A DNA stretch of 63,837 bases, filler included, from Choristocarpus tenellus KU-1152 (taxonomy: Eukaryota; Protista; Phaeophyceae): assembly GCA_964200185.2 (NCBI GenBank). It is 11 parts of 11 records of this genome, joined end to end, with 100 filler letters (N's around TTAATTAATTAA, not from the genome) between each part and the next. Parts side by side here need not be neighbours in the genome. Positions count along the whole stretch, not along the records: positions 57,457 to 60,060 come from CAXNAD020026353.1; 10 more parts are not named here. The stretch is one strand, 5' to 3'. The number at the start of each line of letters is the position of its first letter. The stretch's first letter is position 1. The position numbers were made by a program, and so were the translations under genes. This document shows, piece by piece, positions 56,711-60,060 of this stretch. The notes beneath the pieces were generated by a model. The model was not told where the DNA came from. It saw only the letters and a list, made by a program, of their open reading frames with translations, and searched no databases.

Positions 56711-57520
56711 TGTGTGAAGGAGTTGTTTCTGCGAGGTGTGTTGAAGTTCTTGCAACCTGACAGGACTGGGTCGTGTTATGTAGTGTACGAGGATAACACA
56801 GGAGCCTTCCATTTGGCTAACTAACCCTTTGAGTTCTGAGAGGACTAAGCACATAGATGGGCGACATTATTTCCTAAGGAACTTGGTAGCCAATGGACAA
56901 ATAATGATTGTTCATATTACCTCAGATGAGCTGCATGCAGATGTGTTGACCAAGCCCTTAGGAGAAGTATCTTTTTGGAGGGATGCAGGGGCTTTGCTAA
57001 TATTAGACTATGTTTAGTGGTTGTTTCTTGCTGAATTTGAATTTCTTGGTGTTTGTTTGGATTTTTTTTTCAGTGAGTTCAATAGCTGATTGTTTTCTTG
57101 TCATATAGGATTGACCTTAGGAGTCTCCTAGAATCCATAATTGTACCTTTTTATTTATGAAGAATTGTTTGAGCTAGGGAGGAGGGTGTTCGATTAGACT
57201 CTTCCAACGCTATCGGAATAGTTGTGGTAAACTGTGTATGGAGTAAGAGAACAATTATTAGTGAATAAGTTATCAAAACCATTTATTAGCGTTAAGCTGT
57301 ATGAGAACATTTCTGATATAAGACCCAAAGTATCTGAGGGGGGGGGGGGGGGGGGGNNNNNNNNNNNNNNNNNNNNNNNNNNNNNNNNNNNNNNNNNNNN
57401 TTAATTAATTAANNNNNNNNNNNNNNNNNNNNNNNNNNNNNNNNNNNNNNNNNNNNAAAAGGGGCACAAAATTTTTGGGGGGGTTGGGGGTTGACCGGGG
57501 GCTCTTCCCCCCTCAATTTT

Positions 57521-57554
<34 letters not shown>

Positions 57555-58261
57555 TGAATTTTTGCTTGTGTTGGATGTTCTTATGTTTTTTATTTTCTTG
57601 ACTGCTGGATGCTATATAGGCAGGTTTAATATACTATTATTTGAATTGCAGTATAGCCAGTGCTGAAAGTGTGTCATTCATCGATCCTCTCAGTATAGGA
57701 TGGCGACTATTAATGGGTGGGGGGACTGGGTGGGGGGAGTTCTAACGTGTAATGGAGATTTGGGTTAGGGTTAGGGGTTTTGATTGTCGAGGGGAGGAAT
57801 TGTCCCTTTGTCCTCCTCTTGGTCATTGCCTGTTTTGCTTTGAAAGGGGACATTCTACTTTGCTCAATCCATTGAATTCCTGTTTGATAGAACCCCGATG
57901 CCAACATTAAAAAAAAAAAATTAAATGGAAAATGTAACTTCAAATATAGACGACTTGTTGTTGCTGCCTACTGTGTTCACAATGCTTGCTCGTCCGCCAT
58001 GATTGGCTTTGTCCTCTTTCAATCAGGGGTATCGGTATCCAACAATGCGAGGTTTGCATGTTTCCACCGAAAGAGAGTGGTCTCGTTGCTGGTGGATTGA
58101 AGGAACCAAGAGTGGTAAGGGTGTTTGTTGTGAACGCCAGCAGGTAGGTAGGTGTATGTCGATTTCCTGTGGTTTGAGTGATGGAGCGCCCTATTGCGTT
58201 TGCTTGTCAGTTATCATTATCAACTATGTCGGTGCAATTTACTCCTGAAGCTAGCTAGCTA

Positions 58262-58497
58262 TAGTGCTTGTGTTTTCCTAAACGACATTAAATGGTAATC
58301 TATTAAGCTTTTATATCATTAGCAGTAGTACTAAAAATAGGAGACGTAATTATTGTAAACTAACTAGATGACAAGTATATAATATTACGGCAAATGCCAG
58401 ATGTAAATGGTGGAATTATGGTAGTCGATACATAGCATCGGTCGAGTTCTGGCTGCTGAAGTAGTTATGATTTTGATCATAGTAAGTTTGACAGGTA
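58262..58497 (+). pseudogene. mrcA: Bacterial penicillin-binding protein 1A fragment (Rickettsiaceae-like), decayed
   Basis: Across 3 frameshifts and stops: ACVFLNDIKW*...AVVLKIGDVIIVN*LDDKYIILRQMPDVNGGIMVVD/GRVLAAE/SYDFDHSKFDR. This matches the alphaproteobacterial PBP1A pattern LK.GDVI.V...Y.L.Q.P.VNG...V.D..TGRVLA..GGYDF..SKFDR just before the RQPGS active-site motif. Confidence 0.8.
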
Positions 58498-58498
58498 A

Positions 58499-58655
58499 AT
58501 GTTAGAATTAAAGCATAAATTACAGTGGAAATCTACTGTTGAAGGATTAGATAAGCCTGACTGGAGTTTACTTGATACGACTAAGGTAGACATACATTTT
58601 TTTGATCCAGACGCTAGGATTTTTTTTTAGAAGAGCTCTGGAGTAGAGTAAGTAA
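58499..58655 (+). pseudogene. rsfS: Ribosome silencing factor (RsfS/Iojap) C-terminal half, bacterial, decayed
   Basis: MLELKHKLQWKSTVEGLDKPDWSLLDTTKVDIHFFDPDARIFF/LEELWS matches the RsfS signature EG....W.L.D....VH.F....R..Y.LE.LW. Confidence 0.8.
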
Positions 58656-58716
58656 ATTAGCACACTCAGTTGGGAGTAAGAATATAGTAAAAATATTAAC
58701 TTAATAATTTATTGCA

Positions 58717-58908
58717 ATGTCTGTATCTCAAAAATTACAGCTACAAAACAAAAATATAGAAAAAAGTATTTTTTCTGATATAAAATATATATGTAATTCA
58801 ACTTCGCTAATAGCAGATTCCTTACAGAAAGGCTTTAGATATTCCCCAACTTCTAGTGGAGATACAATAATTACACAAGTTAAAACTATTAACACTCAAT
58901 ATAGTTGG
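58717..58908 (+). pseudogene. DUF2671-like (Rickettsiaceae) protein, truncated, with compensating frameshifts
   Basis: MSVSQK...IFSDIKYICNSTSLIADSLQKG/DIPQL/SGDTIITQVKTINTQYSW resembles, as recalled, Rickettsia DUF2671 (DVKYIC...LITDSIRKGYDVTQLPNGDI.VTE...N..Y.W). Confidence 0.65.
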
Positions 58909-59157
58909 GGTCCAACAAGGCAAATAATGTGACCATCTGTTCATACATATATGCCACTAAGATTAGTTCCAGCATTAGCATTAGTAACAGTGACATTATT
59001 ATTAGCTCCTGAATTCGTCAAAGCCCAATCATCATTTCGAAAAACACGTTTTCCTACAATCACCATAATATCATATCAATTGCAGCACCATTACCAACTT
59101 GACCAACAGCAGTATCTGTACCGCCCTTGGAGGAAGTTCCTCCACATTGTTTCAGGT

Positions 59158-60060
59158 TGTTGTACGGGTTGTCCATGCCGTCAGAGGCAAAAAGGGCACA
59201 GTAGCTCTCACTGCAGTACTGTGGTGGTATCAACTGATCTCTGTTCTATAATATCTACTCTTGGAGAAGATGATGTTCTATAATATCTACTCTTGGAGAA
59301 AATAATGTTCTATAATATATATTCTGGAGAAGATAATGTTCTATAATATCTACTCCGGAGAAGATAGTATTCTATAATATCTAATTTGAGGAATATATTT
59401 CTGGTTAACTTTGTCACTACCATAGATGGTGCAATTTCTTGCCTTTGTTGAAACTGTACTTATCAGTTTTTACAGGTAAGGTGTTGTGCAAAATAGGACA
59501 TCGGTGAGGTGTACCTTATTTTGTGCGTGAGAGATTATCCATGTGTCCTTGCGATGTAATCAATGAGATAGTACATCCGGATTATGAATGGGGTTATGTA
59601 TGAGTTTTTATTCTGCATTCAACTACTTTGACATTACTGTTGACTTATGTAGGAAGCACAAAATAATAATAAAACAAGCAGTAAGAAGACACCCCCCACA
59701 GAGGTCACTCTTCTAATTTCAACCATGTAAAAGTCTTCTACCTGCTTCTTACGTAGTCTTTTGGTCAATATGTCTGCAAGTTGGAGTGTCGTGGGAATAT
59801 ATTTTACTGAAACAAGAATCCTTTGCTAACATCCTCCCTGGTGCATTTTAGTTTAATATCTACATGCCTTGTCCGTCCATTGAAGCCTTCAGTCACTGCT
59901 GCTTGGATTGCACCTCGATTGTCTCCATACCAACTTGTGACCCCTTTGAGTATGCCCAGCTCCCCCAGGATGCCTCTGAGGAATATTGCATGCCTCATTC
60001 CATGCACCATCGCTGTCCATTCCGCCTCTGATGAAGATGTGGTTACAGCTCCCTGCGTCT
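59158..60060 (-). mobile_element. Second Ty1/Copia element: RNase H end, PPT and candidate 3' LTR
   Basis: Minus: TQGAVTTSSSEAEWTAMVHG...YGDNRGAI...RTRHVDIK.../YIPTTLQLADILTK. A G-run at 59697-59692 is followed by TG at 59691, and a possible LTR end ...TACAACA lies at 59158 (boundary uncertain). Confidence 0.8.
59242..59395 (+). repeat. ~31-32-bp tandem repeat (TGTTCTATAATATCTACTCTTGGAGAAGATGA-like) x~5
   Basis: Directly visible; lies within the candidate Copia LTR. Confidence 0.88.

Follow-up and report, generated by a model that had tools for sequence, protein, structure and literature searches.

Decayed Rickettsiaceae-type gene fragments, a probable nuclear insertion in the brown alga Choristocarpus tenellus

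The DNA described here is a 2.6-kb piece (positions 57457-60060, record CAXNAD020026353.1) of a longer stretch of 63,837 nucleotides, filler included, in which 11 parts of the assembled genome of the brown alga Choristocarpus tenellus KU-1152 (GCA_964200185.2) were joined end to end. We call that whole stretch the window, and all coordinates count along it. Within the piece lies an AT-rich island (58262..59130) whose plus strand carries three abutting broken gene fragments, from PBP1A (fragment A), RsfS (fragment B), and a DUF2671 protein (fragment C), followed by an AT-rich remainder, segment D; a retrotransposon remnant lies further to the right. Taken together, the data argue that the island is most likely non-functional Rickettsiaceae DNA of the marine Megaira-group type that now resides in the nuclear genome of C. 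tenellus.

Results

The island stands out by composition before any gene is recognized in it. Its GC content is 32.7%, compared with 46.1% in the left flank and 40.1% in the right flank, and when composition is followed in 50-nt steps the drop falls at ~58250-58275 and the recovery at ~59075-59100, the true right edge lying within ~59090-59130. An earlier note made from the sequence alone had described an abrupt AT-rich island of ~0.9 kb, and these values bear it out. For comparison, Rickettsiaceae loci range from 31 to 38% GC, and two host contigs have 44-45%. The peptide strings quoted in that note are all present in the plus-strand frames of a six-frame translation, interrupted by stops and frame changes. 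No tRNA and no Rfam match was found in the piece, a DNA search of a plasmid collection with the whole island returned no match, and neither a flanking direct repeat nor a target-site duplication was found around the island.

Fragment C (58695..58930, plus strand) comprises most of a DUF2671 gene and ~20 nt of upstream DNA, recognized by PF10877 and by protein and DNA identity. The profile matches the window at 58708-58929 (+) with an E value of 3e-12 and 46.7 bits (gathering score, 23.2), the protein shares 66-68% identity, across 96% of its length, with proteins of 78 amino acids (aa), and 22 columns are invariant in all 24 aligned DUF2671 sequences, the window copy included. Homology begins at 58695, only ~20 nt upstream of the ATG, and ends at ~58930, some 7 codons before the stop of the 78-aa bacterial homologues. 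Pairwise DNA alignment places a +1 insertion at ~58833 and a -1 deletion at ~58851, 18 nt apart. The 23 homologues all share the pattern G-[LKNFM]-D-[VI]-A-Q-L-P-[STN]-G-D; at this place the window has GFRYSPTSSGD, and LDIPQL appears in the neighbouring frame. The 71-codon frame at 58717-58932 is thus open by accident, because the +1 and -1 frameshifts cancel. The suggestion of a decayed DUF2671-like piece therefore holds, with the correction that its 71-aa frame looks open only through cancelling indels. An intact DUF2671 gene was considered and rejected on the two compensating frameshifts and the lost C-terminal end. Exact look-ups of this 71-aa frame and of a 110-aa frame further along the window found neither on record in public collections.

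Fragment A (58307..58498, plus strand) is a piece of a PBP1A (mrcA) pseudogene. For this and the following fragment, E. coli mrcA, mrdA, rsfS, and mrcB were taken from the annotated K-12 record and compared locally. A one-protein blastx search matched 58328-58495 to residues 401-455 of E. coli MrcA (E = 0.002), and a read-through translation with X at each break aligned collinearly to the same residues with a score of 69 (z 10.7), a value reached by none of 2,000 shuffles. The two halves taken separately fell at collinear positions with z 4.5 (5 of 2,000 shuffles reached the score) and z 5.2 (2 of 2,000). The region covered comprises the end of the OB-like insert specific to PBP1A and, immediately ahead of the active-site serine (SxxK), the 'GG.DF..SKFNR' stretch; the GT51 domain and the SxxK, SxN, and KTG motifs lie outside it, and since homology stops before SxxK, what is present is a piece of a gene rather than a gene. 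It is interrupted by in-frame stops at 58361-58363 (TAA) and 58433-58435 (TAG), changes frame near 58431 and 58466, and terminates at a TAA at 58496-58498. The decayed PBP1A piece proposed from the sequence was thereby confirmed, with two stops and two frame changes. The stop-free pieces of fragment A (18, 23, and 26 aa) had no Pfam or NCBIfam match at E values up to 10, being too short for this to count against membership, and a search of the PDB with the 23-aa and 26-aa pieces gave 0 matches.

Two other penicillin-binding proteins were tried as the source of fragment A, and both scored at chance level (PBP2, z -1.0; PBP1B, z 0.7). In E. coli K-12 (L020:2317-5037), rsfS lies two genes from mrdA, which encodes PBP2. 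The idea that fragments A and B are syntenic through a PBP2-rsfS neighbourhood was dropped, as fragment A is PBP1A-like and not PBP2-like.

Fragment B (58508..58644, plus strand) is the C-terminal third of RsfS, the ribosome silencing factor, identified through PF02410, TIGR00090, and alignment to E. coli RsfS. At 58499-58627 (+), the window matches PF02410 over profile positions 53-91 of 98 (E = 1.7e-5), and its 25.4 bits exceed the gathering score of 21.6. The match to TIGR00090 (E = 9.9e-5) scored 22.4, under the equivalog cut-off of 56.9, because only a third of RsfS is present; the first two thirds, on the N-terminal side, have been lost. When X was placed at the break, the read-through aligned to residues 68-105, the final 38 of E. 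coli RsfS, with a score of 77 (z 12.8), which none of 2,000 shuffles reached. A one-base frameshift falls within a run of nine T's (T9) at 58620-58628, ahead of 'LEELWS'. An RsfS fragment broken by stops or frameshifts had been described, and the fragment and one frameshift were recovered. The 43-aa RsfS piece gave 0 matches against protein representatives, and a homologous-protein search returned no candidate. Sequence comparison, which for fragments A and B drew on E. coli and Pfam, establishes the gene family of both pieces but not their lineage.

All three fragments are damaged, as had been proposed: fragment A by stops and frame changes, fragment B by one frameshift, and fragment C by two. 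The lesions of the island total two stops and at least five frame changes, plus truncations. Substitutions add to this count. At the 73 nucleotide columns invariant across 13 distinct bacterial DUF2671 sequences, the window differs at 7 (9.6%). In the DUF2671 core, the window differs from contig L005, one of its closest bacterial relatives, by 11 changes at codon positions 1 and 2 and 8 at position 3, compared with 1-13 and 18-28, respectively, between pairs of bacterial sequences (Fisher p 1e-4 to 0.09, depending on the pair). Such a flat distribution over codon positions reads as drift without selection and greatly exceeds what polishing error would produce. Long-read errors could still account for single-base indels, especially that in the T9 run, but not for the stops, substitutions, and truncations. 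The changes at invariant sites and the flat codon-position spectrum therefore identify a decayed copy rather than a living contaminant, and the argument from decay against contamination by a living bacterium, made at the outset from stops or frameshifts, is supported by both.

The relatives of fragment C are bacterial. In DNA, positions 58695-58909 share 82% identity with metagenome contigs L005 (a Logan run), L004 (ENA), and L006 (a Tara sample), and 75% with L001-L003 and L008. Contigs L001, L004, and L005 carry genes for a TLC ATP/ADP translocase, isocitrate dehydrogenase (icd), and fumarase beside DUF2671; L006 is only 506 bp long, with no neighbouring genes visible. When one genome per species was scanned with the DUF2671 profile (185,579 species), 12 loci were found, all in metagenome-assembled genomes (MAGs) of Rickettsiaceae type. 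Of these, nine carry the label Rickettsiaceae or Rickettsia, and one of the nine is 'Candidatus Megaera endosymbiont of Nemacystus decipiens', from a brown alga (locus L016); the others are labelled Rickettsiales, Alphaproteobacteria, and as a 'Rickettsia typhi' MAG. These labels, together with the ATP/ADP translocase in the closest contigs, a protein characteristic of parasites of this sort, uphold the Rickettsiaceae-like origin first proposed from the sequence.

Within that family, third codon positions of the DUF2671 core differ at 8 of 49 sites between the window and L005, compared with 18-28 of 50 between bacterial lineages, and this low divergence implies that the donor was a near relative of that marine lineage. 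When a maximum-likelihood tree was built from the DNA of the 237-nt DUF2671 gene, 11 of its 13 inner branches were without support; in the same tree, the window copy was nearest L005 and L004 by path length and sat on a long end branch (0.65). Assignment of the donor of fragment C at family level, to the Rickettsiaceae, is sound on these comparisons. Searches by tblastx and tblastn with the piece and with E. coli MrcA, RsfS, PBP2, RlmH, and NadD against the fetched Rickettsiaceae loci found nothing beyond DUF2671.

In bacterial loci, icd or a gene for a 444-aa protein precedes DUF2671, and a pentapeptide-repeat protein follows it. Marine Rickettsiaceae-type contigs regularly show at least one very large pentapeptide-repeat protein (596-1104 aa) in that position (L001:10385-13585, L004:4848-10183, L024:595-3909), a pairing that might hint at a role for DUF2671.

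The fragments of the island are not neighbours in such genomes. The mrcA piece ends at 58495 and the 3' part of rsfS begins by ~58508, a gap of ~12 nt, yet none of the 16 bacterial loci with flanking DNA (~10 kb on each side or to the contig end) has rsfS, mrcA, rlmH, or nadD near DUF2671. The island is therefore a mosaic, as the earlier note had it, and we would not expect to find the order PBP1A-RsfS-DUF2671 in any living genome.

The right flank ties the piece to its host. On the minus strand, 59485..60058 is probably the remnant of a Ty1/copia-type retrotransposon, as judged by protein and DNA identity and by Atlas scores of 0.96-0.97 to eukaryotic clusters, one of which is named Ty1/copia. 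The C-terminal end of pol occupies 59637-60058, with one frame change near 59807-59825; no Pfam match was obtained (RVT_2 tested), only this end of pol being within the piece. An 84-aa piece of the remnant is 80-89% identical to five C. tenellus proteins and, over comparable lengths, 63-68% identical to two Discosporangium proteins. At the DNA level, 59730-60056 is 92.7% identical over 327 nt to contig CAXNAD020000736.1 of the same assembly (GCA_964200185.2), and a second stretch is 79.5% identical over 249 nt. The Copia element reported earlier in this contig is a dispersed, many-copy repeat of C. tenellus. To the left, the flank at 57457..58261 has a host-like composition (GC 46%), with no gene recognized in it. 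From the copia matches and the likeness in GC of the left flank to the host contigs, we conclude that the host is C. tenellus.

Discussion

These observations fit best with a fragment of an intracellular bacterium that was captured by its host. DNA released from lysed bacteria would have reached the nucleus, where several short unrelated pieces of 140-240 bp each may have been end-joined into a chromosome break, in the manner of mosaic insertions of mitochondrial and plastid DNA and of Wolbachia insertions in animals. Alternatively, a longer insert may later have been shortened by deletions. Once inserted, the DNA would have drifted without selection, accumulating stops, frameshifts, and ~10% substitutions, and would have no present function. 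Decay of that extent would suggest that the insert is old.

Several points weigh against this interpretation. Both junctions are known from assembled sequence alone, in a piece of only 2.6 kb that begins with homopolymer runs like those of low-quality sequence. The left flank had no sequence match in the two Choristocarpus contigs fetched. In principle, long-read errors could account for three of the frameshifts, for example that in the T9 run. Comparison of the PBP1A and RsfS pieces covered E. coli and Pfam only, and segment D matched nothing.

The shortness of the piece and its homopolymer runs would also fit an assembly in which reads of a Rickettsiaceae bacterium from inside or on the surface of the cultured alga had been misjoined to host repeats, leaving the island outside the algal genome. 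The C33 and G-rich runs at the left of the piece are typical of poor reads. Bacterial contigs were removed by the Phaeoexplorer pipeline, which could have left mixed ones in place (10.1101/2024.02.19.579948), and another assembly from that project has been reported to contain Megaira-group sequences. An assembly chimera would, however, have to contain a pair of false joins within 0.9 kb, plus no fewer than two others inside the island, between pieces that are not neighbours in any relative, and a living bacterium would not be expected to carry stops in its class A PBP, changes at 9.6% of the sites invariant in 13 relatives, or a flat codon spectrum. We consider a chimera improbable because of the several false joins that it requires within so short a distance and because it leaves the decay unexplained.

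The open DUF2671 frame (58717-58932) raises the question of whether the insertion could be partly domesticated, with the 71-codon product expressed and useful to the alga. The frame does run from an ATG and spans 96% of the 78-aa homologues, but it is open solely by virtue of indels that cancel 18 nt apart, and these replace six nearly invariant residues (DVAQLP). Further nearly invariant residues are altered and the C terminus is lost, there is no excess of third-position substitutions, and no such protein is on record in public collections. Nor does the frame have promoter, intron, or signal support of a eukaryotic kind. Taken together, these features make domestication very unlikely.

Equally implausible is a location in another eukaryote, such as a protist contaminating the culture, or outside the nucleus in an organelle: although only the right flank is tied to C. 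tenellus and the AT-richness resembles that of organelle DNA, the copia sequence in that flank is 92.7% identical to a C. tenellus nuclear contig and 80-89% identical to five C. tenellus proteins, and the organelle genomes of brown algae are not known to encode PBP1A, RsfS, or DUF2671. Insertion into an organelle was rejected, fragment C matching bacterial contigs and not organelles.

Capture of bacterial DNA by a host nucleus has well-known counterparts. Transfers from Wolbachia to the nuclei of insects and nematodes have been widely described, and the island would resemble them in being Rickettsiales DNA integrated in a host chromosome, mostly non-functional and decaying neutrally. Those cases differ in involving animal hosts with germ line infections and inserts of anything from <1 kb up to an entire genome; in the present case a stramenopile alga is the host, the donor would belong to the Rickettsiaceae, and one tiny insert has been seen. 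In layout, there is a parallel with the mosaic nuclear insertions of mitochondrial and plastid DNA known as NUMTs and NUPTs. In these, too, short, non-contiguous pieces lie joined in jumbled order at a single site, probably through end joining; they are AT-rich compared with the nucleus and decay as pseudogenes. Unlike NUMTs and NUPTs, the island has a bacterial donor, and none of its three genes is known to be organelle encoded.

Among algae, the nucleus of Volvox carteri EVE contains a ~9-kb stretch of rickettsial DNA with four genes, which was checked by PCR in 13 strains (PMC4324946). As proposed for C. tenellus, the DNA is Rickettsiaceae DNA of Megaira-group type in an algal nucleus, and in V. 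carteri it is taken to have been left by an endosymbiont since lost from the strain. The V. carteri insert is longer, at ~9 kb against 0.9 kb, its gene order was compared with that of endosymbionts (synteny), and its host is a green alga. The C. tenellus island consists of three or four short, non-syntenic, heavily decayed pieces in a brown alga and was read from an assembly alone.

Bacteria of the same family are associated with brown algae today. The Megaira-group genome MegNdeciBESST, with a GC content of 31.75%, was recovered from genome data of Nemacystus decipiens (PMC10132079), and sequences like those of Ca. Penulousia are present in the assembly of Ectocarpus sp. 12 (preprint 10.64898/2026.03.27.714854). 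These symbionts share bacterial family and host class with the case described here, and the GC content of the Nemacystus symbiont is close to the 32.7% of the island. In contrast to the island, a dead fragment amid host repeats, they are present-day bacterial genomes with intact genes. The DUF2671 protein of the Nemacystus symbiont (L016) is 51% identical to that of the window and is not its nearest relative.

Bacterial endosymbionts of ochrophytes are barely documented; only two are clearly so, both of them Rickettsiaceae (preprint 10.64898/2026.03.27.714854). The Phaeoexplorer preprint makes no mention of Rickettsia or endosymbionts (10.1101/2024.02.19.579948), and a full-text search, limited to the library searched, found no published report of such an insert in a brown alga. 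We suggest, very tentatively and with more doubt than confidence, that no earlier trace of DNA from a bacterial endosymbiont may be known from the nuclear genome of a brown alga, or indeed of any ochrophyte, which would make the island the first. The transfer of DNA from symbiont to nucleus is already known as a process, to which the C. tenellus island most likely adds a case.

C. tenellus is a member of the earliest-branching order of brown algae. If the interpretation as a nuclear insertion is right, the island is a record that this species or an ancestor carried a Rickettsiaceae bacterium, and an early-branching brown alga housed such bacteria in its cells for long enough that some of their DNA was left in its nucleus. 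The transfers seen in Wolbachia hosts and in Volvox would then extend to a new major lineage. Should further fragments turn up in the assembly, or the same insert in Discosporangium, a symbiosis with the Megaira group could be dated to early brown algal history. As the insert is without function, it is of modest, historical interest unless others come to light. It also serves as a practical warning for gene-transfer screens and contamination filters applied to the set of brown algal genomes.

Additional features of the piece

Segment D (58931..59125) is AT-rich to ~59090; its best reading comes from two frames of the minus strand and is rich in N, T, A, and G. It had no match in Pfam, NCBIfam, or the plasmid collection, or by tblastx against 19 Rickettsiaceae-type loci; a 44-aa piece of it gave 0 matches in the PDB, and an Atlas search for the segment gave scores of 0.83-0.84, which are uninformative. 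It may be a fourth bacterial fragment, which is a guess, or host DNA. A frame of 110 codons (58951-59283, plus strand) begins in segment D with an N terminus resembling a signal peptide, extends into host-like DNA and a tandem repeat, and has no Pfam match; it is probably a chance frame.

At the far left, positions 57457-57560 are homopolymer-rich, with runs of G5-G7 followed by the C33 run (57522-57554). This end resembles the low-quality ends of reads, and its outermost 100 nt deserve less trust. The host-type TTAGGG motifs to which the earlier note had drawn attention come down to just 2.5 copies of GGGTTA at 57762-57776 and are uninformative; with so few units, any telomere-related meaning was rejected.

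Between the island and the copia remnant, 59242..59383 is a tandem repeat of 4.5 copies of a 31-32-bp unit, 90% alike, which was not found in the two host contigs fetched. Two adjacent segments of the C. tenellus repeat in L021, at 1680-2004 and 2175-2418, match the copia remnant in opposite relative orientation, the first corresponding to 59730-60056 reversed and the second to 59485-59726 forward. The remnant has therefore been rearranged, by inversion, relative to that copy.

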